From: Oopsacas minuta
Lineage: Eukaryota > Animalia > Porifera
Assembly: GCA_024704765.1 (NCBI GenBank)
Contig: JAKMXF010000299.1
Location: 186,001-250,000 of the forward strand
DNA: 64,000 bases
Reading direction: 5' to 3'
Positions 29 through 22,758 of this stretch are shown here, piece by piece. The position numbers were made by a program, and so were the translations under genes. Numbering within the stretch: the stretch's first letter is position 1; each line of letters begins with the position of its first letter. Under the pieces are notes generated by a model. It saw nothing but the letters and a program-made list of their open reading frames with translations. It was not told the DNA's origin and made no database searches.

Positions 29-3000
29 GGAATTTGGTGGAGATATTGATTTTACAGGGCAGAATTTACAAAATTACACTACACAAGAAGAAATACCAAT
101 ACAAGATAAGGGAAATATACGGAAAGAAACACCTATTATAACCGATCATCTGGGACTTAATCCAGATGAATCAGATCTAAGCTACGCCTCAATAAGAGAC
201 AGATTAGGATCAGAGAGAATAGCAGAGCTTGAGAGAGTATACGCAGTAAAAATATATATTGAAAAGCTAATATTTAATTCACAGCAGCTAGATCTGATTA
301 TCAAGCAAACATCTCCGTCACAATTATCAAGAATATACAGGTAATACATTTGAAACCATTGAGTAGATATTTAACTAATTGAACCTATCTATATAGGAGT
401 ACATATATTGTAGAGTATCAATTGGACACTACAGGAGGTGAGAAGAGGTCTAGAAGACCGGAAGAGAGTACACGAGTTATTACCAGGAAGATGGATGGAG
501 ACGGTAACATCATATTTAATCATAGGACTGTTATGCCTATATGCTTAACAGGGGGAGTTATAAAGAAATGGTGGAGCAATATACTGGAGTTCAAAATATA
601 TAAAAAGAATTTGGGACAGAAAAAAGCAATTAATCTAGGTATCTATGTATATATTAGAACCTCCGTCGAATTTGTATTTACAGCTTTCTACGTTAGGAGT
701 TTCTGTGATTAATCTCAAGAGTGTGTTAGAATCACAAAACCTGAATATGACGTCATCTTTGGATGTACAGATACCTACACATTTACAGAGAGAGCAATAC
801 CCGAGTCATTTAGACGTTATCATAGAGTTAGCTAGCGAACCTCTTAGAGCTCATCGTAAGCCAAAACAAATAGATAATACAGGTTTGTAGTACTACAGTC
901 AGCTCCCGTTATATCGAAGCTCAAAAGACCGCGAAATTTCTATTTACTATGCAGATTTGATATAACCGGTTAACAATATGTTACTTTGATAGTACGGGAT
1001 CATATTTGGACCATTTCAGACTTCGATATAACTGGGAGTTGACTGTATTATAATATTTCAATAAATAGATGGAATAATTTTCAGTGAAACAAAAGAGAAA
1101 CATGTAACATTCGCGTGTTCCCCTTCACATACAGAAGAGCCTTATAACTCTTCAGATCAACAAGAAAGTTCTCAATCAGATAACGATATACCAATTACCT
1201 CAGGAAGTGATCCTTTAAGACTTAACCTATTGCTCCTCGTTACAGATGGTAGTGAAATATCTGTAAGTAGCAAACAGTGTCCTTGGAGAGGAGTTAACCC
1301 TTATTTAGTGGCCAAACTTTTCTGTGCTGACCCAGCACCACAGAGTAGTGTGCATTGGGAGAATGGAGCTCCTAAATTCGCATTCAGGTTCTTTCCAAAT
1401 TTTATTATAATGTCATCACTAAAATATTTTACACTGTTTATTATAGACAATTATTTCCTATACAACTAACACACAATATTCTAACTACACGACTATGTAA
1501 TAAGGTTGTAGTGATAGAAGTATGGCATAAAGAAACTAATAGAAACAAACCAAGTGATGAGCTTATTGGACTCGTACAGCTGTCACTACATCAGTTCTAT
1601 ATTAACTTTACTCACCCAGAGAATGTAGCACAATCTCTACAGGTATTTGCAATTAGATTATTTTGCACATAAATTCAAATATATAAGTGTGTAAATATAC
1701 GTATAATGGGTTGAACTTATCCATGGTTCGAATTTACCACGAAACATGATGTCGAATTAAATGAAGTTTCTGTCTCTTGTATATTCTAATTTACCCAATA
1801 TTCTAGGGCCAATACCCAGTAGTAAGTGAAAATGGATGCTACTCCATAACTGACCCATTAACTGGTAGAAATCGCGGCTACATATCCGCGCTCCTGGCAT
1901 TGGGATCATTAGAACAAATCGAAGCTTTAGAACAAAACATCACAGAAGGCGCATACTCAATTAAAACAGCAGCTAGCACGAAACAAAATACTTATCAAGT
2001 GAGTAATTACATATGCTATAATGTTCAATACAGTTATGATCTGCTTAATATCCTTGCTATTAACTTGAGTTATTAACGCTTTTCTCTCTAATACGTTTTG
2101 TCCCTGGTTCATATTTCGTATTATAACTCGACTGTATTGGTCGTTTCATCCCTTGTGTACGTCTCTCGTCATTCTTAGTCAGTACATTTTCTATGGAGCT
2201 CTGTCCATTATTGCTTTGCGATTCACTTTCACTATCACTACTTACACTTGTACTACTGCAAGAGCTTGAGCTACTCGATGGTAGACCTGTATTTGCTTCT
2301 AAATCAATCTGTTCAGCTTCCTTAGCTATTTCAGGGCGATATTTCCGCAGGGTTTCGAGCCATCTTTTCGCGAGTTTCGGTCTACTTTTCATAGTTTTTG
2401 GAATGACTCTATGGAAAGTGAAAGGCGTGACAAGGTTTTGAGTGACAGCTATACTCAAATCAAGGTTCAGTACAACATGCCACCAACCTCCTGGAACATA
2501 TACCACTTCACCTGGACCATGGATAAAGTCATAAGGCTTATACTCGCTAGGCCAAGAGGGAAGCAAACATTTCGGGTAAACATGATTAAACCAGGATATC
2601 GCTTCTGACCTCTGTTGCCCACCCTCACCCATACGGGGCTTCAACATCTCCTTGGGGGTACTTGGTGGGAAAATGCACCAATGTTTGTGTCCACGTACAA
2701 CCGCGTTCCAAGCCGAAGTACCTAGGGGATCAATATGTATACCGGTACCAGATCGAGCTGGTCCCATAACAAACCATCGATAAGGTGGCCGTCTCGATTC
2801 ACTCGCATATCTAAACAGATCATCTACGAAGTAATCAGGTACTTGATAATCCTCTAACAAAGATTTCTTCTTTCTATGATCAGCAAATCCACTGTCAAAC
2901 ACATATAAAGGGCTGTCATCCTTGGTTGATTGTATGTAATGTCTGTAATATTTCATTTTTAACTTTACACTAAACCCATCATCATCTTCTCCGCATTTGA

Positions 3001-6000
3001 ATTTCTGATTGCGGTATTTTTTCGTGAGTCGTTCAATTGTCCATTTTTTCCTCGCAGCCCAATCTCTCAACAATCCTGTGATTACTACAGGTTTCCCTGG
3101 CAACTCATATCGTCTATGGAATGTCTCAATACTTACATCAGAAGCACTGATTCTTTCAATATTATCAAAAACATTCGAAACATTCGTAGTATCCTTATCA
3201 TACATTCCGAATTGTGTCCAACCGAGTTCGCCCTTCAATTCGGGCCTGGCTCTACCCTTTACATCCGCTATCGTCCTATCTGCTCGAGAAATAAATCTCA
3301 CTTCATCTACGTTCTGTGTAATGCTACCTCTGGTGTCCGTGTATGGTGATTGTATGTTAGATGCCATTCTAATTGAAATATAATAAATGTAGAAATATAA
3401 TTATGTTCATAAAGTATCATAATTATTTTGTAAGGCCTAACGCGGTGAGTTATAAATAGCAAGTTTTTTCAGGGACTTAGAATTAATTTTGTATTGGAAA
3501 ATTCCTTTAGTAAGTTTACTTATTAGCAAGGGAAATCGTGCAAAATACGAAATTACTAAAGGCGAACTCAACTGTAATTATTTTAATCTTTGGTTTAGCA
3601 ACAAGATGTATCTACACCAGTCTACCTAGCTCAAGAAGGAGGATACCCTAAATCAGCTGATCACGTATTCTCTGAAGACTCAGAGCATGTATTTGAGATT
3701 TGTATAGAAGGAGCTAAAGATGTACATCCATTGGGATCAGGTAAATTACGATAATTAAAAAATAATAGATGAGTGGCTCCCAACCTGGGTCCATGGAGCC
3801 CTTGGTGGTCTACAGACGACCCACGGGTGAAATAGGTTGGGAACCACTGCATAAATCTACTCTATTACTATTCTTCGTAGGAGTATGGGGTGAAACAGAT
3901 TGCTATGTCTCTTACAAATTCCCAATTTCAACTCGGAATGAACACTACACCATGGATGAGCAAGTAGAACTAACTACATTCAATACACCTACTACGTTAA
4001 GCTTACCAGCACCTAATTTCTCTGCACATCATACTCATAAAATATTTCTCCGTGGAGGAACTTCTCTCCAACAAATCCTACTCGATTCTACATATGAAGG
4101 AATGAACCGTGAAGACAATGTTATAGAAAAAATGTAAGTTATAATAATTATATAAAGTGTATAAGAGCAATGGCTGTAAGAAAGAACCTAATAAAGTGAT
4201 ACAAAATAATAGTAGGAAAAGTATATGAAAGTGTTTGTGAGGAAACAAATCAAGTGCGTTCAATGAATGAACTTTAGCGAAATGAGTAGCTTATGTAGAG
4301 GATAACTATAGGAGGTTGGGAGAGCTAGTAGAATTCGTTAAGACCATGAGGTACACACGTTTCTAGTTCACGAATCCAGTGACTTTCTCTTTCCCCAAGT
4401 TTGTGAGGCTTCACGATCTCTATTCCGATCAGTTCAAATATCTTCATTGGGTCATCTTTAGCTGAAATAGCGCCTTTACTTTTTTCAATCTTGCATCGCT
4501 TATCTTTGGGGATATTCTCGCGGTTTTTCGTGTGTTCATAAAACGCGTGAACATCCGCACTAGTGCCCCTACCATGCCTTGCCATTGACCTATGATCCTC
4601 TAGTCTAGCTTGTAACTCCTTGCTACTTGAACCAACGTACTGCTTACGACATATAGTACAAGTTAGTATGTATATTAGACTACGAGTATTGCAATCGATT
4701 GCGTCACTAACTTCGTATATCTTCCTTCTCTGAGTACTGGTGAAATGTTTCTTCTCAATCATCATATCACAATTCTTACATTCTTTCTTCTTGCAAGGAA
4801 TCGTACCTACATTCTGTGGGAAAAAGCATATTTCACAAGTAGCTTCATAGTAGAGTATCTTCTCCAAATTATCCGCGGTGAAGAATTTTTCCCAAATAGT
4901 TTTCAAACTCTCGAACACATCTGCAGTTATTTTATACCGCTCAACCTTGCCTTTAGGAATGCCAATAGTATCGAATTCAGTGTAGAAAGTGCGTTCCATG
5001 CCAATGGGTATAATTTGTTGTAACTCCTTCTGATCTTTCTTTATCAAGAAGTAAAGCAGTGAGTATAAATCTTCTTTCAAATTGCGTAGAGTCTCGTATA
5101 TTACTCCAGGCTTGCTTCTCAAGCTGAGAAGTGCGAAATGTCTCACCTTATGCTGGTTTATCACACATACGAGAAGATCAGCTAGAACGCATTTAGCTTT
5201 TTCACCCACGTTTATACTTCCAAGAAGTTCCAACAATTCCATCAAAATATGTACTTTTCTCACACCTTCAAGACAAGTGTCAACTGTAAACCTACACCAC
5301 ACACAACGTCGATATGAAGGGTTCACTCTGTGATGCACGGCCCTGCACTTAGAACATCTAATCTGATTCTCTAATTCGTCATCACTGTCGCTATCATTAC
5401 TCAGAGCCTGGGGCAATATATCAGCTGATTTTTTAGCTACCTCTCCATACACTTCAGTCAAATCTATACAGTTTATGAATGTAGAATTGTCTATTATGAC
5501 AGTAGTGTATTTTAGCTTAGGAACCATCTCTACACTTCTACGAAATAAATATGGCCAGAATATTTCAGCTGACATATCAGGAGGAAATACACCGCAGTCT
5601 ACTACGAGATTAGTTGAATGTTCTACGATTGTTACAATATTAGCTTCGTTGTAATAGTGGACACGTATTGAGATGTCTAATTCTTTCTCGAATGGATCTT
5701 GAGCTGGTTCGGAGGATTTACGACCGCTTCGATTGAACCCTATACCGAAAATAGTCCTCTGTCCTGACTTGTCTACAGTCTTAGTTAACTGCGTGTATAC
5801 CCGAGTGCGATTTGATTTTATAAGTTCATCAAGGAAGGGCGTGCCTCTAGGGAAAAGAAGGAGAATACGAGATACCCCAAAACTATCACTTAGAAATTCA
5901 GGAATTCCCTTTGCCTCATCGAAAACGGATTCTTGCGCGCGAATACTCTGCTCAAAAGCTAGTTTAGCGTTCAAAAACTGATGCTTTGCCTTAGTTAATG

Positions 6001-9000
6001 GACTGTATGCAAGATCTTGTGATGCAGGCTCTGACATAACTAAATTGTTTATTTTATCAAATCGCACAATCTTTTATCTAATAACTGTAATGCCTACTGT
6101 ATACGCCTTGTGATCATATTTACTGGTTGAATAATCAGCCAAGCGCCTCAATAAACAAACTCAATTGATGAAATTAAAATACGTATAACGAACTAGGACT
6201 TCTTGATTATTAATAATTTTAAGACGAAAAACATTGGGTGGCATACGTACACGAACTCAATTGTTTTCATTTGACACTATTTTTAATGTTTCAAATTTAT
6301 TAAAATTCCAATCATATAAATTACGTAATATTAATAACACGATAACATATCACATGATTTGAGATCACATACAAATACTCGACCCTTGGCGTCTAATGTT
6401 ACTCCTCTGGGATTTGTGAAATCACCACCTGAGCCAATTTTTGTAATGAACTGGCCATCATTCGAGAATACCTTGACTTTATCTGTTAAGCTTTCGCTTC
6501 CGATAATATTGCCAGCATTGTCTATACAGAAATGTAAGCCTCCGTTAAATTGAGAGCTATCAATCACTGTACGCTTCAATTTACCGTTCTTATGGAAACA
6601 TTGTATTGTGTATTCTGAGTTTGAGAATAAGACATACCATTCTGAGTTGTGTAATTTCGAATCCATTATTCGCGTTCTTCCTTGCACGAAATGTTCTGTT
6701 TCAAGTTCGAGTTGCGTTATGATATCAAGGTTGCTTGTTTCTAAGGCGAATATATTTCTCTTTTTAGTTTCGAAAACGTAGAGAATTCCTTGTTCATCAA
6801 CGTTTATTCCTGTTATTGGATTGTTTAACCTTTGCAACTGAACCATTTCCCAATTTCCTTGTTCATTTTTCTCGAATTTTAACACCTTACCATTTTGTAC
6901 ACCACAAGTGACGAAAAACGCGTCTTTATAAGAACACATGTATAATGGTCTATTCAAGTTTGTGTCTTTGATCGTGGAAATATATTCGCCATTCTGGCTG
7001 TATACGTTTATCACATTTTTATTTCGGTCAGAAATAAGTAGTTCGTTCGTGTCGAGACTTAAGATTGAGAATGGCTCTTCCATTTCATTTTCACAAGTAC
7101 CCTTTTCTACTTCCATCCATTCCGGGTATACACGTTCGGTATATGGACAAATGTTGATGTTAATATTGCAAAAATCTTGGACATTTTCAAGTAACTTTTC
7201 GTTCAAATCCAATTCAACGCTTGGAGCTACCAAACTTTTGTCAAGTAGCTTCTCAATCTCTTCACTAATCGGTAATAGAGTTTGATACATGACATCTGTT
7301 AGCTTGTTATCTCGTATATTCACGACATTATCTCTGCATTTATCTAGACAAGATAATTTCCTATCTCTCTCATCAAGATTACATTTTGTATCATTGTATA
7401 CTCGATCTAGTTCTTCAATCAAATTTTGTTCTTTTTGATCAATTTTTTGTCTGAGATTCTCACATGTTTTTCCGATTTGCTGTTTTTTCGATTCAACCTC
7501 ACTCTTCAGTCGTTTCAAAGATAGAATTTCTAATTCTCTCTTATTGTTTTGAAACATTGCAAGTTTGAATATTAGTTTATTTAATTTTTAGCCAAATCTC
7601 TCATATATTTATACAAAAAGTTGTATAAAAATTAGTGAAAGCATTCTATGTCTATTCTTAGAGAATATAATTGGATTCTAAGTATTGCCTAATAATGTGC
7701 TTAAGGTAGCATACTTTCTATTTCTCTTTAGTTCACATAAATTTTTACGTAATAATAATGTTGTAATTAATTCAATATAAGCAAAATACGCTTTACAATA
7801 ATTTAAGAAATATCAACTACAATGGCAGTAAGCATATCAAGGATGTGAATTCCAGTGATATGAGGATGTGAGTAATTGCGTCCTTCCTCCAAGTAAACAA
7901 CAAAGTTCGTCATACACTGTTCCCGAATCATCTCGAGTTAATCTAATTAAATTCAGGTTCAAGCCATTTTGGGAAGGTTTTAACGTTTCAAAAGAGCTTA
8001 AAAACTGAATATGTACATGTAGTTTACTCACAAATATTTAGAATATTTAGAAAATTAAATGTTTTGTTTATCATATTACAGTCAACTCCCCTTAAATCTA
8101 ACACGGATATAGCGCAATTCGCGCCCGCTAATATCGAAGTTTTAAATCGTATGAATCATTAGATACATACCAATTGCCCAATAAAGCTGCCACACACGTA
8201 ACAAATGCATGATAACGTGTGACTGAGGTAAATAAATAATCTCAGAATTAAACAAGTTTTTTAATCTGGGGTTAGCTAATCTATATACCACCTGGAGTTG
8301 TAGTTATAAAAAAGATCTCTCAAGTGTGTTTTGTAGGGCTAAAAGTGTAATTTTGATATTTCTTTTATGATTGTCATTTTATGTCCCAATTTAGTGATTC
8401 CAAGTGCAGATAAGTCTTCTTTATCCAACAGTCCTAGGTGAGATCCTTGTATGTCATTGTCAATAAACGCGTTTTGATACATTTCCATACCAAAGCTCTC
8501 TAACCATTCACCTACTTCATCTGTAGACCATTCAGCTGTTTTTTTGAACTGACGACTATGCTTCAAATCCATGCGGTATAATATCTCATCTGGAGGCGTG
8601 ACATCATCTTGAGTAGCCTGATTACTCATCGTGTGTAACTCTAGATTAGATGGAGGTGGTGGTAGATAGTTGTCTTGGTTGAAACTCTTCTCAATATCAG
8701 GGGGAGGGGGTAGCATTTCGGGGTCTATACCATCGAACCATTCTGGAGGAGGCATGAGTACATACGAGGGAGGAGGGGACGGTATACCTGGAGAGTACAA
8801 AAATGAATGCGGAGGAGAATCTGCCTGTATATCAAGTGGAGTAGGTGTGTAGTCTAAATATGGTTCAAAGGTCAGATCCTCTTTTTCTGGTCCACCCTGG
8901 GGGAGATCACCTGGGAAGGTCAAATAGTTTGGTTTAGGAGGTGAACCTTTTTCAGGTGGTGAAGTAATCTGACCTGTTAGCTTACTCAGTTCAGAATCAC

Positions 9001-12000
9001 TGATTGATTTCTTAGTTACACTCCTTGTAGTGTTATAATGGCCTTTCCAATAAGCAGTATTATCTTCATAATCAGGACTCACCTCTTCGTTATAAATACT
9101 CGGTATTCTTCCTGCAATAGTCTGCTCATCCTGTAGTGTATAAGTGATACGGTTATCTGTAGGGGATAGTGACGTAATATTCTGTGTGTATATACTCTCA
9201 CAACTCTTGGATTCAGAAGATAATTGTCTACTTATAAACTGGTTCGCTTCATCTAGTTTGCTAGGTTTTTCTCTGTGTACTTTCTTGAGCATTCGTTTCC
9301 AATGTTGTGGGTTTTGTTCATCGAGTTGAGCTGAGTTTGAGAGTCGCCTGATTGTAGCAGGACTTTCATTTTGTATTGTACATAAGTCAAATTGGGTGTT
9401 GCATATTCCCTGAGACTGGCTAGGAAATTCGTTTTCGTTTTCACTGTTAGGAGGGTCTAACAGGTAGCTGTACTCTTCTGCTCTGATTTTGTTCTGAAAT
9501 GGAATATCTTGAGTTGATAAGTTATCCAATTTTCTTGTTGGACTAATAAGGCTGTTAGGTAATGCCTCCTGTAATGTGTTTTCTGTTTCGTATGTAGAAC
9601 TCCCGAGATCTGAAGTTTGAGATTCTCCTTTCTTGTCAGAATCTGAGTTTTTAAGAGATAAATTAGAACCAGTTTCACTTGCACTATTACTCTCTGTTTG
9701 TTGTGAACGACGTGTTTTAAGATTTAAAGATTTTTCTAGAACAGCTTTAGCGAATTGACTCAGATTTACATTACCTTCCTCTACCTTCCCTTCAATGACG
9801 TCAGCATTCGCAGTTTCTACTTCAGAGGTTTCCCGTCGATATTCATTAGCCAATTGTTGATCACTATCCCCTACTAACTGATAGAATTCTTCTACTGTTT
9901 GCAAATGCTCATACTCGACTGGATCTCTATCAAGTTGATCGTATTGCTCATAATCAAAATCTCCAGTTAATTCGCCTTCAAGCGTATCTTCACTCGGAAA
10001 GTATTGACCACCGTAATTCAAACGATCGTACGTGTCCTCTCCTTCATAGGGGGCTGAATAGTACAGGTCCATACGATCCAGGGTATCATAGGGCGGTTCC
10101 TCTATAGGGGACAATCTCTCGTAAGGTGTGAAATCTCCTTCATCATCAAATGTAGAATCAGCTTTATTATTTTCTAAAGAAGCGTTACTGAATCTTTGAT
10201 TAAACATAGAATAGTTTCCTTCATATTTGAATTGATTCTGATCATTTTCAGAATATTCATTAGCCTCTATTTCGTCATCTACGTAGATTGAATCGGCTTT
10301 AGTAATTTCTGTTTCTAGGCCTAGTTCACTAGTAACTATTTCCCCCTGAGAATTATAGAACTGTCCAGATTCTATTGTGAAATCAGACACTTTCGAATCA
10401 GTTTTCATGTCAGCATTACTACTACTTGAATCGTTATTATAACTGTATTCTATTGAATCTCTGTTAGAATTTCTCTGTATATGAACTAACTTATTGTCAT
10501 CAGATATCTTACTAGCCAAGAAAGTATCAGATTTAGATTGTAACTCATTTATAACTTCTTTCTTCTGTCCATACATGTAAACCTGTTCCTCATCAGCTGA
10601 TATTTGTGTACGTAGTTCTCCTTTTCCATCCTTATGCACTGTTGCGTAATTATGAACATTTGTGTCTGGGGGTGTGATATTTTCCGCAGCGCCGTGTAAT
10701 AAGAATAAAGGATTGACGTGACCTACCCTACGACTATCTTTCCCAGACTGGGCGACATGTTCTCTCAACCTACCCAATTCTGAATCAGAACTTCTTACAG
10801 CAGTACTGTCTGTATCAACCATTTTCTGTACTGGTCTAGCCCTAGGGGGTACCTCAGGTTTTTGAATCTGTGAGAAAGAACTAGTTAGGGATTTGACTGG
10901 GGCAATAGGTGGGGGTGGTTGTACCTGTAGTGATCGGGTTACAGTCATTTCTAGAACTTTCTTAGTAGTGCGTACCAATTCTACAACTTCGTTGTGAGGC
11001 ATAGTTACCACATTCTGTCCGTTTATGCATAAAATGAAATGTCCAACTTCTAGTCCGGCTCTTTCAGCTGCTCCAGCTTTATCAACCTGAGCTACATACT
11101 GTAAAGATGGTACTACAGGAGTGGGATGGTAGTTTTCTAGATCACATGTAGCTCCTCTTACAGAAAAACAGAATCCTTTCGTTGAACGTTTTATTTTTAT
11201 TTTCTTGAACTTTAAACTCTGATAAATTGGAGAATTACCTTTTTTCGGGGCTGTTTTGTTTACATTTATAAGCTCTACACATGTACCGGGGAACCAACCT
11301 TGTTTTCCATTACTTATACCCTCTATAAATCCATCTTTACCGATATTAAGCACTTCTATATTATCTCCAGCAGTTAAAGCAATATCTTCTTTAACCTGAG
11401 GTGTATAATTTCGCGTTACAGCATAGGAATTACCTGTATTAACCGCACGAACCCTCACTCGTTCTAGTGTGGCCTTTTTCGTAGTTCTAAACATGGATCT
11501 TTTAAGAGAGCCAAACTTAGAAACGCCCAAATTATCATTGGGAGTAGAAACAGGGTCGTTTTGTTTGAGTTTTGATACATTCGGATTTCTAATACTTTTC
11601 TTCCTAGTTTTGTTTGTAACACATAACTGGTACATTTGTGATACAGGTCTAGCGCGTGGATTATAGCTAGGACGGTCAGAAAACTTAACAACTTCATTCT
11701 CATCATGTTGATCTATACGTTTAGCAACATTCTTATTACCTGAAATAATCGCTACTTGATAAGGAGTTCGATTTGAATAGTTTAATATTTCTCTATTAAC
11801 ACCACGGCGTAGTAGAACTATAGCAGCAGCTTCCTGACCATGTACGCCACATATATGTAGAGGGGTATTTCCACCAGAATTCTGAGAGTTCACGTTTGCT
11901 CCATACCAAATTAAAAGCTCCATAATGTCTACAAGACCTAAAGAGAGATCAGTTACTATTCATTATATTTTCATAATAAAACTGCAAATTAGATTTCTAA

Positions 12001-15000
12001 GTTCTAAATTTGTATTGGGCAATGTAGGAAGAGTTTAAAATTTTTAGTTCCAAGAACTTTTAAACTGTTTAAACCACAATATGATTAGGGAAATAATTAC
12101 ATGTTTTAGTGATTTGTTTCAAAAACTCCAAATTAATTCTTTCGTATTTTAGATAATTTACCAGAGGGACCTTACAATTAAGTAAACTTTATCAGCTATA
12201 CATATGTACTTTTCTTTGTGTTAATTCCAAGAAATATTTTGCACTTAAGTCATATTACTTAAATTAAACTTAGAAATATTTATGCATTTACATAAGCCCT
12301 GAGCTTGCATGATAACCTACAGCTAATTCGCTTTCAGAATATGTCCCTACACGTGCAGGTTGAAAATTGCTCAAATGTTAAATCGTATGATATATTCACT
12401 TACCAGCTTTCGAAGCATGATGTAATTCACTCCATCCATTGAAATCTGAACACCCAACTACACAACGTTCTCTCATGAGAATTTCGCATATTTCTCGCGT
12501 GTTCGATAACTGACAAGCTCTGAATAGCGGAGTGATAAATTTAGAATCAAGAGGACTAGGAGATGCCCCAAGTATCAACAACATCTTAACTGCATCTCTT
12601 TTCGTGTCTAATACAGCTTTATGCATTGGAGTTATTCCATCACGATTTCGATAGTGTGTTATAGCACCACCGTTGACAAGTGTCATGATGACGTCAGTGA
12701 AATTAGAAGGTGCTTTGGAGCTAGCAGAAAAGGTAAGAGGACTTTCTCCAGTTTCCTCTGATAAGAAATTAGGATCAAATCCCCCAGAGAGCAGAGTCTC
12801 TAGTTTCCCAACTTGTCCTGTTGCCACAAACTCGAAACATTTCTTTTGATTCACTTTGTTGTTTATTTTGTTTACTTGACGTATATCCAAGTGATCTTTA
12901 TTGTTTCTACGCTTTAGCATATATTCAACCGTGGGTGGGGAATCCGCGAAAATGTCCAGGATCTCACCAACACACCTATCCTCAGAAATAAACACTCCCT
13001 CTTCAGACTCTAAAGTTTGTCTTACGAAAAACCCAAAGTTAAAATGACTATGCTCTTCACATTGAAAAGGAGCCAAGTCCCTTATAGATTGCAGAATATG
13101 CCAAGTTGATTCGTGGAAATAAACTGGGATGATTTTATGTTGTTTTTCAGTGAAGATAATTTTTAGCTGTCCAGACTTTTGGAGTCGTTTTCTCTGTGTC
13201 TCGTTCATCACATTAGCTATAACTTATACAAATCATATATGTGATATCCTTGTTAGGTAATATTATAAGAAACTTCTATGAAATATTATACTTTCAGTTT
13301 ACACAATAATATTCCAAAGGATTATTTGAAATATTTAGAGTATGAGTAAGTGTATGTTACCTTTCTCCTTATTCCTATTAATATTTCAGAGAATGAATTA
13401 AGGTTAAATCCTGATTTACTAAAATTCATGTGTAACCTGTGATTAGCAATAAACAAAATACGTAATGTAAATAATACAGAAACACATCAATATAACCCAG
13501 CATTATTTCTTTGAATACAAACAAATTACCTGCATTTCAATAGCATGTTTAAATAAATTCCTATGTGAATTGAGCTAAATGTTGTTTATACATTAAGTAT
13601 ACGAGACCTAATACCATTATGAGTAAGGTGATAAGGTATATGTCCCAGTTTATAATAAATGAGATGAAGAATGAGATTGGATTTATACTGAAGGGAAGAT
13701 TGATATTCGAGGCAACCCAGTCCAATTGTGACGTCATGAGTAGGTTGAACAGAGCGAGATGTACAGCTATAGATGAATCTGGTTCTAAAGTCAGGCATTC
13801 GTCGTAATTACGCTTTGCTAATGGGAAGTCCTAAATAGAATAACATATATAATTTTCGGTAAATGTTGTTGCAAAATCGCGATCAATTCGTTACCTTTAC
13901 TACTCCAAGACCTCTCTCATACATATACCCCATATTAAACTTTGCTTGTGGATCTTGAGCCTTTGCTGCTTCTTTATACTCATTGACTGCACTGTGATAA
14001 TCAACAGGTCTCCCTATTCCGTAATAATTATAATCTCCAAGTCGTATTTTAGAAAGAGAAGACCCCTGATCAGCTGATCGTGTCCACATATGGAAAGCTC
14101 TGAAACCTGGGTCACTAAGTTGAGGGAAAAGTTGTTTTTCATAATTTTCTAGTAAAAATGCTGTATTACTCTGTGCTACCTACAATAAGATAAAATTCAT
14201 TTAAACAATGGATTAGAACTCTGATTTGGGATGCATGCATTAGTCCAAACTTCAGATGTTTGCGTTAGCCGAAATTTTTAGTGATCGAATGCATGCATTC
14301 ACGGGGAAATTTCGTAGCGAGGAAATACAGTCATTTACTTTCGTTGTTTTGAATCAAAATACTCTCAGCAACTCACAGCCTGCTCCAGATCCAACTCACG
14401 CAAACATCACCAAAAATTTGGACTAATGCATACATACGAATTTGGACTAACGACGCCCCCCCTTCTGATTTATATAATTATAATTAGAAAGTACCTCGTA
14501 TCCTAATTCAGCTAGATAGCTGTATATCAGGTAAGCACGTTGATAATCCGCTTCTTTATACGATTTATAAGCTACCATCAATAGATGGGACCAATAGCCT
14601 CTCTCTGCCACGCCCTTATACAGCTGTACAGCTGTCTGGCAATGCTTCAAAGGAACCCTCTCATGTGCTTGATCCGCGTTAACTTTCGCGAGATAGTATA
14701 TAGCAAGGAGATTCCCTGATTCTGAGACTTTAATGAAATGTCTCAGAGCTTGTTCCACATTTCTAGCAACACCATACCCATAATACATCATGATGCCAAA
14801 GTATAGAATAGCTTCAGCATTATTTCCTTTAACCCCAGGCTCAATTAGTTGTCTAGCTCTCTTGAAATCTTGATCCACTCCCAAACCAACCAAGTATAAG
14901 AATCCCAATACAGCTTTTGCAGTTATACTATTACCTTCAATGGCTCTATATATAGAAATGATATATTGTTATACACACAATTGATGTTTAGATTTTACAG

Positions 15001-18000
15001 CCAATTACCTATTCAAATATTGAATAGCTTTATCATAGTCAGTAACACCCTTCAGTGTACAATCACCGTATATCATGCCTAGCGTAACCAAGGCTGTTTC
15101 GTCATCCTCTAAAGCAGCTAATTCAAAGTATTTAATCGCCGTGTGTACATTCCTAGCTGCCCCTTTGGTTCCCTGGAGGAACAGCTGACCCAGTAAATTA
15201 GTAGAACTTATATCTCCTTTATGTGCTAGCATCTGAAAAAACTCTACAAGGTCCTGATTCATAGTGTTAACATTTGCAGATTCATCGTCATCATCACTAA
15301 GCCTGAATTTGTACAACGCAGGTCCTCCAGATAGACCGATCTACCAGGAAAAGTATAAATATGGACTCAAACTGGAGTTAAATCAATAATAACTTGCTTG
15401 TTTTAGCATTTTCTTCCCTACACGTTGATAGTATACCAATGAGGTAGGACAAGATTGTGTAACTCCCAATCCTTTCTGGTATCTGTATCCTAGAGCCATT
15501 TCGCTCAGTACGTCACCACCTAATGCACTGAATGTATAGTACGTAAGAGCTGTTTGAGGGTTTGGCTTTGTGTTATTTGAATCAGTTTCATTGAATAAGC
15601 CATAACCTAAAATTTGAGAAAATATATTATTTTCGCATTTTCATTATTGTTATTACCTCAAATTGAGTTTACTTACCTGATTTGTATATATATCCTAGTA
15701 CATTTTGTCCTGAAGGAATACCTTTATCAGATAAAAAGTTTGCAATTACCAACGCAAGTGTGAAATTCCGCGTGACCATTTCATCACCAAATAATAGTCG
15801 ATACATAATGTTAGAATAGTTTGCGTATATTGTCCCATTTAGTGCCCATTCAAATGCAACAGATAATTGAGTTTCTGTTGAGAATTTAACTTTACTTAAC
15901 AAGTGATTAAGATATTCTATTTCCTCGCTTGTTAGTGTTATTTCAGTGATATGTTTTACTGGTAGAGTTTGTGCATTTGTTTGACATAGTTCCAACAAAT
16001 CTGTATCTAACTGTTTGTGTACTTTAACCTGATCTTCAACTTCTGATCTAAATGGGGATATATAAGTTAGCTACTAAAATAAACATTAAAACTTGGAAAT
16101 TATTTATATTTCCGCACATTTCCTTGACAATATTTTCAACTGGAGCTGCTTTAACAAGGCTAACAACAACATCTTTATTAACTTTAAGTAATTCTACAAT
16201 CACATCCTCACTGACTCCACTATCAAATATCTCTTGAAGTACTTCTCTAATCTCTTCTTGAGAGAGCACGTCGTTCATAAGATCAACTATATCATTTACG
16301 CTCAAAAGATTTATTTTCTCAGTTAACTGCTCTTCGAATCGTTTCAAAAGGGTTTCTGTTCGTTCTGTGCTGCCAGGAAGTTCATCTTTCAGACGTTTAG
16401 TACGATCGATAAACGCTTCAGCTAACTTTACTTTAGCATCTTCATTTTCAAATATATCTTGTGTACTCGTATCGGTTTGTTCCTTTAATATTATTAAGAA
16501 TATGAAACAAATATTCAGCAAATTTTATGAACGCTATAACCAAGGTTTTGCCAAAATTTTAGGAAAATTTATGTCCTTACCTCAACAAAATTCGTTAACG
16601 GCGGTTGAATAACCCCTTCAATTGTCCGTTCATTATCTTCATCATCACTCTGAATTGGTGTAATTAGTTCATCATTATCATCAGCATAACATATTCCCAG
16701 TATACAGAATATAACGAAAACTAACATACTACCATGTTTTACAATCATATCTGTATCTCTTCATATATGAATGACTAAAATGAGCTAAATTTACGAATAA
16801 TAACTAAAAACGGTATTCTCTTAATCAGGTCAAAACACACGACTGATGAAGCGAGAATAACAAATATCAAAAAAAGCAGTTTATATGAATTTATTAACTA
16901 TTGGGAGAAGTACGTAATTATTCTTATTATTCAGTATCTTTACTTATTATCTTTAGGAAGCTAGTCAGCCCTGTCAATCGACAGTGATTCTCTAAGAAAT
17001 TGAGAAAATGTTGAGTTTGTCCTTTGTCCTCAAGGATTGAGAGAGGATGATAGATTGTTGTTTTCGAGGAAGTAGTTGGTTGAGTTAACTCGAAATATCT
17101 TGATACGAAACCAGCCAAAGCCAGGTGGTTACATAGAAGAAATGTATTCTCAACTTTCTTGATGTTAAAATGTTTAATCACCAAGTTTGGCAACAAAAAC
17201 GGTTGTCTTTCTTTCACAGTTGCCATTAGTGGACTCGGCTGTAGTTTCGATGAAATTGTTAAGATTAAATTATTGAATATTTCTACTAATACCTGCATCT
17301 CACTACTGTAATAAATCTTCCCCGCAAAACTTTTTATCGCTTCAAATGCTTGAAAATAATGTGTTAACAGTCTGAAGGTCAAATTGAATACAATAGGCGA
17401 TTGATGAACAAAAAGTTTATAGATAAGATTTGTATGTGGCATGTATACTAGAGCTATTTTGTGACGTATCGGTATCTGTGCTATTTGATCGAGAAGTAAT
17501 ATCGCGGCCACTGTTGTCTCTAACACTGTATTATCCGCACTTAGACAATAATAACATTCTGCGAAGGCAAACTTAATAAATTCATCGAAAAGATGTAGTG
17601 TATCTTCTGGATTACAGCTGTCATTTGAAATATTATAATTATTCGTCATTTTATCAGGGCTTGCTATCGTTTTAGTACCCATACGAAATAGCCAATTATT
17701 CAGTAGATGGCCTAGCGCTTCGAAAAGGCCAAATACAAACGAGTGAGTACGTTCATCGTTTATGAGTACAATATTGTATGAAATAATAGTTTTGAGTTGT
17801 ATAAATGTAGCTATATCAATTTGTTGTAATGCTGTGAAAAGTATATCACCTGGATAATGGGGAATCCACACGGGTAATACATGTTGAACGAATAATCCTA
17901 TAGCAGGTAGAGATTGATTTAAGAACTCTGCGATTGCCGAAAGAGTCTGTAAGAGAGAGGAAATAGTGTAAATAATTTGAAAGGGTAGAGACGGAGTCAT

Positions 18001-21000
18001 ATGCCAATTAATTCTATTTACAGTATTGGCTAATGGATCATTAGATTTTGAGGTAATAGGTGCAATAGCTTGATCTAGCCAGAAAAGAACCATACTAATG
18101 GCTGTGTGATCTTTATTGAATAGCATTGCAGTTAATTGCGCTAGCATTGGTTGTTCGAACTGTGTCGTTTCGCGATTAAATATATCATACAATTTGGTAG
18201 TCATCTCTTCACGATCTTCTTTGGATAACAAGTCAATGGGTCGCCTCGCGAAAATGGCACCTTTACTAAGTGACCGTGTTGTCTCATTTGGGTGTTTCAT
18301 ACGCACTTTGTATATGTCAAATTGTAATTCAGGATCAGGGCATTCGAACCATACAATATTATTCTGTTGCCCAATATTAAAGTTAACGAAGTCTGAGCGC
18401 AACCGTTTGTAAAGAAATAACAATCCATTAAATTCAGTAGACAGATATAACGAATTATAATTGTATCGTAATATCTTCATAACGCGAAATGTTGTTACAT
18501 CTTCTCCACGCGTCATGAAAGCCAGAAGATGGCAAATATGAGGACACAGATAGTAAGAAGATATGTAATGCATTATTAAGTCGTAATAAGCATTCAGTTT
18601 ATATCTGTTCTCGATATACGGGTATACCAGTATAATCCAGTCTATTATTGAAATCATAGTGTCGAGTTGATCTGCAATTTGCACAGATAAAGAATTGAAC
18701 CAAAATATAATTGTTATAACCGATTTTGCATTGATAGTGTCGTTTGGAATTAGAAGAGAAAGTAAATTCTTTGGTGTTTGTAATTTTCCTTTAGGCAGGA
18801 AATTAATAATCTCAGTAATTTGATTTGAATTTAATCCAATCTGTTTGATTATTGATCGTATATGTAGTAGTGAAGATTTTGTACTTTTCTTTATGTGATT
18901 TGATTGTAAGTCTCTAATGAAACTGTTTATTTCATCTTGGAAGTGATTGTTATCATCAGGCATTGCCATTGATTAAATTGCTAGCTAAATATAATGAACT
19001 TTGTATAGATTATATAATACATGTTCTTATAACTGGCATAAGATATACAGGAATATATGAGAACCGTTTTCCAGAGAATCCGGCATATTAGCATATCCTG
19101 TGTTCTTATAACCGGCATCTAGTATATGAATTACTTTTATGACAGAACATTTTCAAGTTTTTATTGTCAAATAATGAGCAAGCAGGAAATATAGTAAAAT
19201 AATCCAACTTGTTAACCAAGCGATCTATAAACCCTATAGGAATGGGCTATGTCAGGTTACCTTCTACCCCCTCTGCCTCTACCTCGCCCCCTCCCACGAC
19301 CACGCCCCCTGCTCCTACCCCTCCCAAGCGGTGTCATAGCTTTCCTCTTCTTCTTCTCGGAAGGGGAATCGTCTATCAAGAGTGTGTCTAATGGGAGGTT
19401 TTCCGGTAGAATGAAATAACGTATATTATTGCCACGTATTGTGAGGAAATCTAGCGACTGAGCTTCCCTTCCTTTTAGAGTCATTTTAACATTCTTCAAA
19501 TGTGTATTCATTGTCATATCCACCCCAGATATTGTGCCGTCTATTATTGTACCATTCTTCAGATAGATTGTCACTTTCTCGTGACTTAACTTCATCAGGA
19601 AACGAACTAGCTTCATCCTAATTTTTCGCTAATTTTATAAAATTACGATTATACATTTATATCCTTTATTTATTAATTATAGGCCGTGGAGACCACAAGT
19701 TGAATTTGAGCTATGGAGGCGATATTATTACCCAAACACACAAAACCACTTGCTAGCCCGTGGTTACCTACCTACAGCAAAGGTATGTGAAATGGTTACA
19801 CAAGTACAGCACGAAGGTAGTTTTACAGTTAAGACATTCACGGTCCCTTTACATTTAGCTGAAAGTGAACAAAACTTTTCAACCCAACATACGGATAGCC
19901 CTAACTGCGGACAGTTAGACCTCACTATAAGGTATTTATATCCGTTCAGGCGATTAATTCTGCGTATTTTAAGACCCTACCTACGGATATGCTAGAATAA
20001 GTAAGATACAGTGTAACATTATTTTAGGTATAAGCTGGTGAAGTTAGATCCAGAATACAGTCCTACAGATCCAACTATTCAACCTTCAAAATATCACCCA
20101 CAAGTATATGTAAAGCTACAAATAAAACAAGCAACAGGGCTTAGAGATGCTGTCGAATTAGCTTCTCTTTCCAACAAAGATATCTCCCTCAGTGAATTAG
20201 AAACTGGCGTGAACACGTATGTAACTATTCGATTCTCTTTCACAAAGAAAACTCACACGACGAAAGCAATTGCTGCAACATTCTCACCAACTTATTCGTA
20301 CGAAATAGAACTTCCCTTGTCACTGTCACAGAGTGTCATTGACAATCATTCACCTGTCAGTTTAGCAGAAATTATATCTAAAAGCACTGTTAACTTTCAA
20401 ATCTGGCATGTACCATTAGCTGATAGAAAATCACAACAGAATAGAAACCACACACAACAACCTCATGTTATCCTTGGAGAATGCAGTCTACCTTTTGAAA
20501 TGTTACTCCTGAAAAGTACTGGTGTAAAGGGGTGGTACAGTTTAAAACCACCTAATGGGAAAGGTGGAAAGTGTGTCGGGGCCCTTGATTTGAATGTGGA
20601 ATTCTCTTCAATAGAAGATCGCGAAAAAGTGTTATACGAGGCGAATAAATTCGGTTTTCAGATCGACCGTCCGGTAAAGTTCGACAGTTTACAATTAGAA
20701 TCAGAACAAAATCTAGAAATTGACATAAACATTCGTCGTCTATGGATATCCAAACATTCTATAAAAGGCAATAACCTATATTACCTGCGTTATAGATTCT
20801 ATGACAAAACTACAACCATATCGCCTACATTCTTTCCTAGCAGAACAGAAGGAAATAGAATGGTATTTAATACAGACTACAAGAAAAGTAGTCAAGTATT
20901 CCCATCCTCTGCTTTTGAATGGTATCTGCAGGAAGAGAGATTTGAACTTCAAATCTGGCAAACAAATGGGAAAACCACACTCCCAGTGATACCATGTGTA

Positions 21001-22758
21001 GAAGATAATTTATTAGGAACCGCTTATGTTAATCTTTATGAGATGTGTGGATTCCGCGAATTTCAAGAACCGCAAATAGCAGGAGTGTATCCTTTATTCA
21101 AACCAGGTGTAATCTCATTAGGAGGAAATTGTGCGGAAATAGAGATCTCCATACATCAACCAACCGAGATCGAACTGCTAGAAAACACCAATAACAAAAC
21201 ATTAGAAGAAACAGAAATCCAAGAATCAGAATCAACATTACAAACTGAATTACCCACAGGAATACCGATTATATTGGCAATAGATAGAGCTGCTCATTTA
21301 TCTTGCCTTCCCTCTCAATCAGGTTGCTTACACGTGACAGTACATGCAGAAACATTGTTGTTCCAAACAGTTAAAATAAAAATAAGCTATTCTCCAGTGT
21401 GGAATTTCCAACAAGAAGTATATATAAACGAGGAAATATTCTCTCCTATGTTAGGGCTAGAAGTTAAAATATGGTATTCTTCGGAAATTGACACCATACA
21501 GTCTCAGCTGGTTGGAGTAGCAAAGGTTGACTTATCTCCTTTAAAATACGGTCTCCCCGAATTAGCAGGTTGGTATAACCTGTCAAATGTCATGTCATCT
21601 TGTCAGGGACAAATTAAATTACGAGCTATACCCAGAGAACGAATGGAAATACCTTCTTCAGTAAAAGTACAACATCAAAGAACTGAATGGGGACATTGTG
21701 AAAAAGCATGTAGTTTGATTGACAACCCTGTCAATACAAGAGATCCAATAGTAATACAAGAGATTGACATTGATTTGACATGTGTTGACACTAATATCAC
21801 TGGGTCGTTCTTAATGAGAAGGCTGAAAAGCTCGTTAGCTGACTTAGAAAATGTTCAGGCTAACTTCAAGCAAAACATACAATCAAAAACTCCTGAAGCC
21901 ATTCATATGATCGAAATTCCTCCAATTGAAAATGAATCTGTCATAGATTTATGTAGTACAGATTCGATTATATTAGCAGATACATATCCAACCATGGATA
22001 ACGTAACTGAATTGTTAGAAGAAATAGACGAACTACCTGTAGTAATTCAATCTCCACAGACATCACGTACTAACAGTTTTTGCTCACAATTATCAGAATT
22101 AGAACCTATTCAACAGCATACGGAGGATATAGGGGTAAATACTACTACCTCAGCTTTTTGTGAAGATGTTATTACAGAGAGTAGCGAACTGTCTTTTATC
22201 CAGGAAATTACAATATCGCGAAATTTATCACCAGCCCTGAGTGAAGAATGCGAATTAACTTCACAAGAACCTCAGATGGTTATAGAAGATAACCCCCATT
22301 ATATTCTAGAAACAAATAATGAGCAATTACCATCTTCTCCTAACCCTAGATCTCTGACAGATATAAGTTCAATTTCGGAACAATTTGAACAAGAAATTAC
22401 CCAAGAACAACCAGATGAAGATCTACTAAATTGGGTTGATTCTGTTACCAAGCATGTACCAATGCAAGACAATGAAATTATAACAAACCGGGTAATATCA
22501 ACTGACGAAAATGGGAATTTAAAGATAAATATCCCAGAAGATTTACATGTACCGAATTATTTTATGCCGCCCGATACACTTTTAGAGAATATGAGGAATC
22601 TAAGAATGAAAGCAATGAGCCAATTCCCTCAAGCCCCACCCAAAGAAGACAATAATCCACCTAACAACCCAACAGGCAAGCCTTCTGTACACTTAACCAC
22701 GCCTCTATTACCATGGGAAGCCAACAGGATTAATAAAATATTCTTAGGAAAAGTCTAA
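29..22758 (+). CDS. C2CD3: C2 domain-containing protein 3 (centriole/cilium protein), 5'-partial, multi-exon, host of seven nested genes
   Basis: Phase-consistent GT-AG exons: 29-340, 397-638, 697-882, 1069-1387, 1447-1642, 1807-1998, 3599-3740, 3881-4133, 19683-19931, 20028-22758. Translated segments follow the C2CD3 motif order as I recall it: [85 protein letters not shown]. Confidence 0.88.
896..1045. mobile_element. MITE, CAGTCAACTCC family (pogo/Tigger-like non-autonomous), in C2CD3 intron
   Basis: TIRs CAGTCAGCTCCCGTTATATCGAAG / CTTCGATATAACTGGGAGTTGACTG, TA on both flanks. Confidence 0.85.
2060..3367 (-). CDS. JMJD6: JmjC-domain protein JMJD6, intronless, nested antisense in C2CD3 intron 1999-3598
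   Basis: 435-aa ORF with [55 protein letters not shown] and poly-Ser tract. Confidence 0.97.
   Translation of the reverse strand: MASNIQSPYTDTRGSITQNVDEVRFISRADRTIADVKGRARPELKGELGWTQFGMYDKDTTNVSNVFDNIERISASDVSIETFHRRYELPGKPVVITGLLRDWAARKKWTIERLTKKYRNQKFKCGEDDDGFSVKLKMKYYRHYIQSTKDDSPLYVFDSGFADHRKKKSLLEDYQVPDYFVDDLFRYASESRRPPYRWFVMGPARSGTGIHIDPLGTSAWNAVVRGHKHWCIFPPSTPKEMLKPRMGEGGQQRSEAISWFNHVYPKCLLPSWPSEYKPYDFIHGPGEVVYVPGGWWHVVLNLDLSIAVTQNLVTPFTFHRVIPKTMKSRPKLAKRWLETLRKYRPEIAKEAEQIDLEANTGLPSSSSSSCSSTSVSSDSESESQSNNGQSSIENVLTKNDERRTQGMKRPIQSSYNTKYEPGTKRIREKSVNNSS
3443..3574. mobile_element. Degenerate CAGT-terminal MITE upstream of JMJD6
   Basis: Right end TTACTAAAGGCGAACTCAACTG-TA and internal CTTATTAGCAA resemble the 31779 element; left end decayed. 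Confidence 0.4.
3771..3849. mobile_element. Short hAT-like MITE (CAGTGGTTCCCAACCT family) in C2CD3 intron
   Basis: TIRs AGTGGCTCCCAACCT / AGGTTGGGAACCACT; shares two internal blocks with the 23820 element; no TSD visible. Confidence 0.65.
4325..6037 (-). CDS. Intronless protein with C-terminal Penelope-type GIY-YIG endonuclease and uncharacterised N-terminal region
   Basis: First ATG at 6037 (570 aa). C-terminus CKKKECKNC...[30 protein letters not shown]...[18 protein letters not shown] matches the PLE GIY-YIG pattern. No RT motifs seen. Confidence 0.85.
   Translation of the reverse strand: MSEPASQDLAYSPLTKAKHQFLNAKLAFEQSIRAQESVFDEAKGIPEFLSDSFGVSRILLLFPRGTPFLDELIKSNRTRVYTQLTKTVDKSGQRTIFGIGFNRSGRKSSEPAQDPFEKELDISIRVHYYNEANIVTIVEHSTNLVVDCGVFPPDMSAEIFWPYLFRRSVEMVPKLKYTTVIIDNSTFINCIDLTEVYGEVAKKSADILPQALSNDSDSDDELENQIRCSKCRAVHHRVNPSYRRCVWCRFTVDTCLEGVRKVHILMELLELLGSINVGEKAKCVLADLLVCVINQHKVRHFALLSLRSKPGVIYETLRNLKEDLYSLLYFLIKKDQKELQQIIPIGMERTFYTEFDTIGIPKGKVERYKITADVFESLKTIWEKFFTADNLEKILYYEATCEICFFPQNVGTIPCKKKECKNCDMMIEKKHFTSTQRRKIYEVSDAIDCNTRSLIYILTCTICRKQYVGSSSKELQARLEDHRSMARHGRGTSADVHAFYEHTKNRENIPKDKRCKIEKSKGAISAKDDPMKIFELIGIEIVKPHKLGERESHWIRELETCVPHGLNEFY
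6331..7557 (-). CDS. Coiled-coil + NHL-repeat beta-propeller protein (TRIM-NHL-like, no RING/B-box), intronless
   Basis: 408-aa ORF; heptad N-terminus; NHL repeats such as [16 protein letters not shown] and [12 protein letters not shown]. Confidence 0.88.
   Translation of the reverse strand: MFQNNKRELEILSLKRLKSEVESKKQQIGKTCENLRQKIDQKEQNLIEELDRVYNDTKCNLDERDRKLSCLDKCRDNVVNIRDNKLTDVMYQTLLPISEEIEKLLDKSLVAPSVELDLNEKLLENVQDFCNININICPYTERVYPEWMEVEKGTCENEMEEPFSILSLDTNELLISDRNKNVINVYSQNGEYISTIKDTNLNRPLYMCSYKDAFFVTCGVQNGKVLKFEKNEQGNWEMVQLQRLNNPITGINVDEQGILYVFETKKRNIFALETSNLDIITQLELETEHFVQGRTRIMDSKLHNSEWYVLFSNSEYTIQCFHKNGKLKRTVIDSSQFNGGLHFCIDNAGNIIGSESLTDKVKVFSNDGQFITKIGSGGDFTNPRGVTLDAKGRVFVCDLKSCDMLSCY
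8079..8140. mobile_element. Truncated CAGTCAACTCC-family MITE
   Basis: TA + CAGTCAACTCC left end, with ACACGGATAT shared with the 62278 copy; no right TIR found. Confidence 0.5.
8339..13208 (-). CDS. SHANK: SH3 and multiple ankyrin repeat domains protein (Shank), two exons
   Basis: Exons 12404-13208 and 8339-11937, phase-1 intron giving ..[19 protein letters not shown]. Domains in order: FERM-like N-terminus, ankyrin repeats, SH3 (GWFPGTCV), PDZ ([14 protein letters not shown]), Pro-rich with PPEWF, C-terminal SAM ([12 protein letters not shown]). Confidence 0.93.
13561..16727 (-). CDS. SEL1L: SEL1L/Hrd3 ERAD adaptor, about 8 exons
   Basis: Signal-peptide exon 16581-16727 ([15 protein letters not shown]); Sel1 repeats; [10 protein letters not shown]; [13 protein letters not shown] across intron 14180-14494; last exon 13561-13830 [20 protein letters not shown] transmembrane segment. 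Confidence 0.92.
14231..14435. mobile_element. MITE with about 38-bp imperfect TIRs in SEL1L intron
   Basis: Left ATGCATGCATTAGTCCAAAC..GATGTTTGCGTTAG versus right reverse complement ATGTATGCATTAGTCCAAAT..GATGTTTGCGTGAG. Confidence 0.7.
16927..18969 (-). CDS. CENPI: Centromere protein I (Mis6 family), intronless
   Basis: 680-aa ORF; [27 protein letters not shown] resembles CENP-I LCPYVCHLLYLLTKKENVKPFRV as I recall it. Confidence 0.85.
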   Translation of the reverse strand: MAMPDDNNHFQDEINSFIRDLQSNHIKKSTKSSLLHIRSIIKQIGLNSNQITEIINFLPKGKLQTPKNLLSLLIPNDTINAKSVITIIFWFNSLSVQIADQLDTMISIIDWIILVYPYIENRYKLNAYYDLIMHYISSYYLCPHICHLLAFMTRGEDVTTFRVMKILRYNYNSLYLSTEFNGLLFLYKRLRSDFVNFNIGQQNNIVWFECPDPELQFDIYKVRMKHPNETTRSLSKGAIFARRPIDLLSKEDREEMTTKLYDIFNRETTQFEQPMLAQLTAMLFNKDHTAISMVLFWLDQAIAPITSKSNDPLANTVNRINWHMTPSLPFQIIYTISSLLQTLSAIAEFLNQSLPAIGLFVQHVLPVWIPHYPGDILFTALQQIDIATFIQLKTIISYNIVLINDERTHSFVFGLFEALGHLLNNWLFRMGTKTIASPDKMTNNYNISNDSCNPEDTLHLFDEFIKFAFAECYYCLSADNTVLETTVAAILLLDQIAQIPIRHKIALVYMPHTNLIYKLFVHQSPIVFNLTFRLLTHYFQAFEAIKSFAGKIYYSSEMQVLVEIFNNLILTISSKLQPSPLMATVKERQPFLLPNLVIKHFNIKKVENTFLLCNHLALAGFVSRYFELTQPTTSSKTTIYHPLSILEDKGQTQHFLNFLENHCRLTGLTSFLKIISKDTE
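19018..19123. mobile_element. Degenerate MITE-like remnant between SNRPD1 and CENPI
   Basis: Direct repeat TGTTCTTATAAC(T/C)GGCAT twice; reverse strand begins TA-CTAGATGCCGGTTATAAGAACAC, like the TA-flanked MITEs. Confidence 0.35.
19257..19616 (-). CDS. SNRPD1: Small nuclear ribonucleoprotein Sm D1, intronless
   Basis: [44 protein letters not shown] plus GR-repeat tail. Confidence 0.98.

Follow-up and report, generated by a model that had tools for sequence, protein, structure and literature searches.

C2CD3 gene model

We analyzed a stretch of 64,000 nucleotides (nt) from contig JAKMXF010000299.1 of the glass sponge Oopsacas minuta (assembly GCA_024704765.1), here called the window, in which a position equals the record position minus 186000. 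Its plus strand very probably carries a single C2CD3 gene of about 28.6 kb, with 16 coding exons and a product of about 1,992 amino acids (aa), including a 15.5-kb intron (intron 14) that contains six complete antisense genes. The gene extends from window position -5822 to 22758, the 5' end lying 5.8 kb upstream of the window. In vertebrates, C2CD3 is a centriole elongation and distal-appendage protein. Counted over the whole sponge gene, 12 genes are nested in this one host, all of them on the opposite strand.

The 16-exon model was built by combining the phases with those coding blocks and splice sites that are conserved, and gives a single 5,979-nt coding sequence (1,992 aa) with one terminal stop. 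Two small introns are ambiguous, and alternative choices give products of 1,961–1,992 aa. The last four exons alone (3599–3740, 3881–4133, 19683–19931 and 20028–22758), when joined, form a 3,375-nt open reading frame (ORF) whose sole stop is terminal. For comparison, the locus was rebuilt in three relatives represented in ENA, spB (ERZ25071281), spC (ERZ25072730) and spE (ERZ25766962), and its 3' half only in a fourth, spD (ERZ23490157). These we take to be hexactinellids, given their 61–77% protein identity to O. minuta (Omin) and their identical gene order. Ten of the 15 introns are 50–186 nt long and the remaining five hold the antisense genes. The earlier note was right that the small introns are short (56–186 nt in the window, plus one of 54 nt straddling the window start) and that the intron holding JMJD6, at 1,600 nt, is the other long one. 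The exons and gene-holding introns of the host gene are as follows.

Exons 1–6: -5822 to -26, plus strand, upstream of the window.
Exon 7: 29–340, plus strand; coding block conserved in spB, spC and spE, within the 5,979-nt ORF.
Exon 8: 397–638, plus strand; matches vertebrate C2CD3 residues ~550–640 in tblastn; 76% aa identity to the relatives.
Exon 9: 697–882, plus strand; donor at 883 less certain, alternative at 856.
Exon 10: 1069–1387, plus strand; part of the 16-exon model.
Exon 11: 1447–1642, plus strand; 81–90% aa identity to the relatives; matches C2CD3 residues ~820–890 in tblastn.
Exon 12: 1807–1998, plus strand; donor CAA/GTGAGT at 1999 kept in four species.
Exon 13: 3599–3740, plus strand; start of the C2 domain split by intron 14.
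Exon 14: 3881–4133, plus strand; ends in phase 2 (..AAA AT); matches C2CD3 residues ~1006–1080 in tblastn.
Exon 15: 19683–19931, plus strand; second half of the split C2 domain.
Exon 16: 20028–22758, plus strand; 910 codons plus stop; remaining C2 domains and C-terminus.
Intron 2: 2,301 nt; antisense Fcf2, MRP-S33 and RPL23 genes.
Intron 3: 787 nt; antisense gene for an EF-hand protein.
Intron 5: 1,439 nt; antisense protein kinase gene.
Intron 12: 1999–3598, plus strand, 1,600 nt; antisense JMJD6; donor and acceptor conserved in Omin, spB, spC and spE.
Intron 14: 4134–19682, plus strand, 15,549 nt, GTAAGT...TATAG, probably removed by cis-splicing; six antisense genes.

Homology and domain structure across intron 14

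Eight vertebrate C2CD3 proteins, of which five had their names confirmed from the source, served as tblastn queries and gave strictly collinear matches on the plus strand. Vertebrate residues ~1006–1080 align to 3883–4098 and residues ~1089–1750 to 19699–21645, so that at the gap 8–12 unaligned query residues stand against 17 unaligned sponge codons; this bears out the claim of the earlier note that the C2CD3 motif order continues across intron 14 with no block missing. Upstream, residues 11–87 correspond to -5693 to -5334 and residues 91–158 to -3068 to -2907, as found with tblastn and a hidden Markov model. The deposited 150-aa gene at -5822 to -5221 carries the C2CD3_N domain (Pfam PF25339), which occupies residues 9–168 of the vertebrate homologues.

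The joined products also align as continuous sequences. 1) The 3,375-nt ORF of the last four exons matches C2CD3 in one high-scoring segment pair (HSP) that runs across the intron 14 junction (E 3e-93). 2) A 205-aa segment centred on the junction gives one HSP with each of about 30 metazoan C2CD3 proteins, with expected values of 1e-19 to 1e-34, most of them around 1e-30. 3) In blastp, residues 444–1622 of the 1,992-aa model align with residues 500–1750 of a vertebrate C2CD3 (P0003) in one HSP (E 5.6e-133) that crosses the junctions of both intron 14 and intron 12, and a second HSP, covering the N-terminal C2CD3_N, crosses intron 2. 4) The best matches of the 906-aa ORF, besides hexactinellid ORFs, are proteins of 2,150–2,600 aa named C2CD3 by NCBI. 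The named homologues found are all from bilaterians.

The sponge model resembles vertebrate C2CD3 in its N-terminal C2CD3_N domain, collinear series of C2 domains and conserved C-terminus, with 27–36% identity in blocks over about 1,300 residues. It differs in length (about 1,992 aa versus 2,250–2,360 aa in vertebrates).

A Pfam scan of the junction segment, in four homologues and in the two exons, gave no C2 match. From a 25-sequence alignment, AlphaFold predicted the homologous segment to be a single eight-stranded sandwich (pLDDT 88), for which Foldseek returned C2 domains, e.g. CEP120 C2C and dysferlin C2A (E ~1e-6). The intron 14 junction maps to the loop between strands 4 and 5, leaving four strands on each side. 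According to this model, the 15.5-kb interval cuts one folded C2 domain in half. Gene-holding introns split two domains in all, as intron 2 likewise interrupts C2CD3_N.

Splice sites and reading frame at the intron 14 junction

The donor and acceptor proposed in the earlier note, AT/GTAAGT at 4134 and TATAG/G at 19682, are both present in the sequence, and joining 4133 to 19683 keeps a single frame. The donor reads ...GAA AAA AT/GTAAGT (4132–4139) and the acceptor ...TTAATTATAG/G CCG TGG AGA (19673–19692). The predicted join of exons 14 and 15, ...GAAAAAAT/GCCGTGG..., falls at residues 999/1000 of the model. The phases are compatible and conserved at all the gene-holding junctions of C2CD3.

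The downstream piece appears to lack a start codon of its own. In every one of the five species compared, an in-frame stop lies 7–18 codons upstream of the intron 14 acceptor, and four of the five have no ATG between this stop and the acceptor. The first in-frame ATG of exon 15 is codon 36, and the 35 codons preceding it are nearly invariant in protein sequence. On the other side, reading on past the end of exon 14 leads in all species to a TAA in frame, which overlaps the donor (ATG TAA GT).

Since the frame is kept, one HSP spans the junction, a C2 domain is split by it, the GT-AG sites are conserved and the downstream piece has no start codon, we infer that exons 14 and 15 are joined in a single transcript by cis-splicing. 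The host pre-mRNA would be transcribed through the nested genes and then cis-spliced at its canonical, conserved GT-AG sites, while the nested genes would be transcribed separately from the opposite strand.

Conservation of the locus in relatives

The order kinase, JMJD6, GIY-YIG, NHL, SHANK, SEL1L, CENP-I, SmD1 and C2CD3 3' part is the same in the four relatives as far as each stretch reaches, and in spB and spC the RPL23 and EF-hand genes also lie upstream in unchanged order. Six or more other assemblies in ENA have long contigs that carry orthologues of the NHL gene and of the C2CD3 3' ORF. The intron 14 interval measures 15,106 nt in spB, 15,517 nt in spC and 16,476 nt in spE. In the four species that allowed a comparison the donor AT/GTAAGT is invariant, as is the acceptor YAG/GCCNTGGAGACC in all five, whereas the sequence just inside the intron is unalignable between species. 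Splice-site conservation extends to the other gene-holding introns.

Compared with the relatives, exon 14 has 72–82% aa identity, with a ratio of nonsynonymous to synonymous substitution rates (dN/dS) of ~0.05–0.07, and exon 15 has 90–93% identity, with a dN/dS of 0.01–0.08. Over both flanking exons the ratio is 0.01–0.08, and the synonymous divergence (dS) between O. minuta and the relatives is saturated. As judged from these sequences, the nested arrangement is old, since it is shared unchanged by four relatives so diverged that dS is saturated.

Alternative explanations

Four observations were considered as points against a single cis-spliced C2CD3 transcript. 1) The conserved TAA may end an upstream piece, as donor and stop are told apart only by two extra conserved bases (GT). 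2) No transcript-derived protein crossing the junction was found in a representative library of 1.84 billion proteins or in a collection of 5.8 billion clusters, in searches with the 906-aa ORF and the exon-14 ORF as queries that returned only genomic ORFs and deposited fragments. 3) Intron 14 contains 16 AATAAA hexamers on the host strand (12–18 in the relatives), which is at or above the expectation from composition; this lack of depletion speaks neither for nor against read-through transcription. 4) A spliced leader is reported from a related glass sponge.

The last two observations would fit trans-splicing, in which the exon groups are separate pre-mRNAs, either joined to each other intergenically or each capped by a spliced leader at acceptors such as that at 19682. 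In Aphrocallistes vastus, a leader of ~37 nt was found on 4% of long cDNA reads (PMC10282587), and host-strand AATAAA shows no depletion. As the junction codon is AT/G, a start codon might in principle come from a leader that ends in AU. We consider trans-splicing quite unlikely. With leader capping alone, the two halves of a split domain would be on different proteins, and a leader-supplied start could not be general, because the gene-holding introns other than intron 14 are in phases 0 and 1 and their junctions have no ATG. A GTAAGT donor paired with an acceptor, phase-matched in four species, is what cis-splicing predicts, and the 35–66 nt from the SmD1 ATG to the acceptor could hardly accommodate an additional promoter with its outron.

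The intergenic form, in which short pre-mRNAs from the spacers between the antisense genes would be trans-spliced to one another, is very unlikely on the same sequence evidence, even though glass sponges possess trans-splicing machinery (the spliced leader of A. vastus, PMC10282587). If true, it would avoid transcription through 12 convergent genes and let a compact genome keep a large gene interleaved with others.

It is also very improbable that C2CD3 has undergone fission in hexactinellids into several independently translated genes. The deposited annotation does list separate genes (150, 104, 528, 146 and 957 aa), and the in-frame TAA after exon 14 occurs in all species. But the downstream piece has no in-frame start in four of the five species, residues 1–35 of its first exon are under strong purifying selection, and the deposited model gains a start only through 23 out-of-frame codons. 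Fission would, moreover, leave two domains halved, at junctions that are all phase-compatible and conserved. An assembly artefact or decaying pseudogene, for which only an intron length unusual in a genome whose introns average 341 nt speaks, has a negligible chance, as the same order is present in four independent assemblies, with an interval of 15.1–16.5 kb in the three where it is measurable, dN/dS is 0.01–0.08 and the 1,992-codon frame is intact. Conserved splice sites and gene order, low dN/dS and a downstream exon without usable start thus make misassembly, pseudogene and gene fission alike unlikely, and favour the single cis-spliced gene.

Deposited annotation

The earlier note had expected an ORF-based annotation to split C2CD3 into two genes. 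The deposited one goes further, cutting the gene into at least five models, of which two are named C2CD3 and a third carries C2CD3_N. The 957-aa model, to which NCBI gives the name C2CD3, begins with an ATG that is out of frame (19713); its first 23 residues come from translating exon 15 in the wrong frame, after which it jumps into frame (19713–19790), skipping the conserved start of the exon. The 146-aa model (3403–4137, "C2CD3 isoform X2") terminates with the TAA overlapping the GTAAGT donor. The deposited JMJD6 model (298 aa, 2060–2956) looks truncated at the N-terminus, as the 435-aa ORF at this position aligns with human JMJD6 from residue 6.

The O. minuta annotation pipeline used unstranded reads mapped by TopHat with -I 5000, and gene prediction by Braker 1.9 and Augustus 3.2.3. 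The 15.5-kb junction was unmappable because the TopHat intron maximum was 5 kb. In addition, some gene-modelling programs, including a version of AUGUSTUS, omit nested genes by default (Francis et al., PMC10282587). The cause of the error is systematic, namely a 5-kb intron maximum combined with a predictor that, according to Francis et al., does not model nested genes by default, so that for O. minuta the numbers of genes and of introns per gene (1.59), as well as some "missing gene" calls, may be biased. The immediate value of the present analysis lies in the corrected gene model, in which at least five public models are merged into a single centriole gene encoding about 1,992 aa, and in this warning on annotation.

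Nested genes

Six complete minus-strand genes lie head to tail within 4134–19682, as the earlier note had proposed, and each is also called in the deposited annotation. Their coding sequences span 4325–19616, wholly between the end of exon 14 (4133) and the start of exon 15 (19683), and of the 15,549 nt of intron 14, 13,401 (86%) are taken up by gene bodies. These genes, together with JMJD6 in intron 12, are as follows.

GIY-YIG protein: 4325–6037, minus strand; 570 aa, with a C-terminal GIY-YIG nuclease domain (Pfam PF01541).
NHL protein: 6331–7557, minus strand; 408 aa, NHL repeats (beta-propeller); Pfam NHL match weak.
SHANK-like scaffold: 8339–13208, minus strand; Ank, SH3, PDZ and SAM domains (Pfam); matches PDB SHANK1-3 chains.
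SEL1L homologue: 13561–16748, minus strand; matches PDB 'Protein sel-1 homolog 1' (E 2e-34).
CENP-I/Mis6: 16927–18969, minus strand; 680 aa in a single ORF; Pfam match, and PDB CENP-I (E 3e-14).
SNRPD1 (SmD1): 19257–19616, minus strand; 119 aa; PDB match (E 2e-50).
JMJD6: 2060–3367, minus strand, in intron 12; 435-aa ORF; PDB chains of human JMJD6 (E 2.7e-141), Pfam JmjC/Cupin_8.

The product lengths in the deposited annotation agree with the claim that two of the six, SEL1L (816 aa) and SHANK (1,448 aa), have introns of their own. The NHL orthologues share 61–69% identity, and JMJD6 ORFs of 430–439 aa occur at the same place in the relatives. The intact ORFs, the positional orthologues in four relatives and the strong matches of SmD1, SEL1L, SHANK and CENP-I suggest that the nested genes are functional.

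The GIY-YIG gene had been described as a chimera, which our results do not support: no second Pfam domain and no PDB match were found, the N-terminal ~450 residues matching no Pfam family or PDB chain, and orthologues of 571–573 aa lie at the same place in three relatives. By these sequence comparisons, the gene behaves like a stable gene of the host, not like a mobile element or an obvious chimera.

The nested genes and the host exons lie close together. A distance of 66 nt separates the SmD1 ATG from the host acceptor (35 nt in spB and spD), and one of 61 nt separates the JMJD6 stop from the host donor at 1999. Because of this spacing, promoters and untranslated regions of nested genes probably overlap host exons and splice signals.

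Two observations concern the SEL1L gene. A plus-strand ORF of 55–62 aa at 13628–13804, reported by ORF callers and present in three relatives, was considered as an extra host exon and rejected, being the antisense of the conserved last SEL1L exon. The SEL1L region also contains an inverted repeat (14226–14252 and 14414–14440; 27-nt arms, 85% complementary, 161 nt apart), which may be a small foldback element.

Origin of the arrangement and comparison with other nested genes

The capture of the six genes as a block, put forward in the earlier note, is conjecture. It is unsupported because no direct or inverted repeats were detected as footprints of capture at the ends of intron 14, the arrangement is old, and intron 14 is only one of five gene-holding introns. 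The transcriptional-interference problem raised in the same place is speculation. The dense locus offers a good natural system for studying the coexistence of convergent transcription, splicing and overlapping promoters in an animal with a compact genome.

Nesting of several genes in one intron is known also from Drosophila dunce and from intron 27b of human NF1. In the insect TipE-like cluster (PMC3240667), several protein-coding genes likewise reside in one host intron, have been stable for long and are commonly on the opposite strand. These cases differ from the C2CD3 locus in that i) their introns of tens of kb belong to long-intron genomes, whereas introns of 50–200 nt are typical here, and ii) the genes in the C2CD3 intron are unrelated housekeeping genes and not a paralogue family.

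The O. minuta genome paper describes a compact genome of 61 Mb, in which introns average 341 nt and number 1.59 per gene. In the manually curated genome of A. vastus, 2,432 genes (12.4%) lie inside introns of others, whereas the O. minuta annotation lists 83 nested genes; many of the nested genes of glass sponges are conserved, and automatic annotation misses them (Francis et al. 2023, PMC10282587). The C2CD3 locus belongs to the same clade and represents the same phenomenon, but C2CD3 is not mentioned in the main text of that study, which compared conservation in two species, as against five assemblies here. Relative to the A. vastus pattern the locus is extreme, having 12 antisense genes in five introns and one intron with six genes that is 86% filled. 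Striking as it is, the locus is an expected example of a glass-sponge property already in the literature, not a new kind of genome feature, and its interest lies in an unusually dense and deeply conserved nesting in which several of the twelve antisense genes are housekeeping genes.

Neighbouring genes

No tRNA or Rfam RNA was detected in window positions 1–30000. Downstream of C2CD3 (22934–27417), an NHL/peptidase S8 gene on the minus strand is followed by a RING/B-box/NHL (TRIM-like) gene on the plus strand (25348–27417). Together with the nested NHL gene (6331–7557), these two genes form a loose cluster of NHL-repeat genes.

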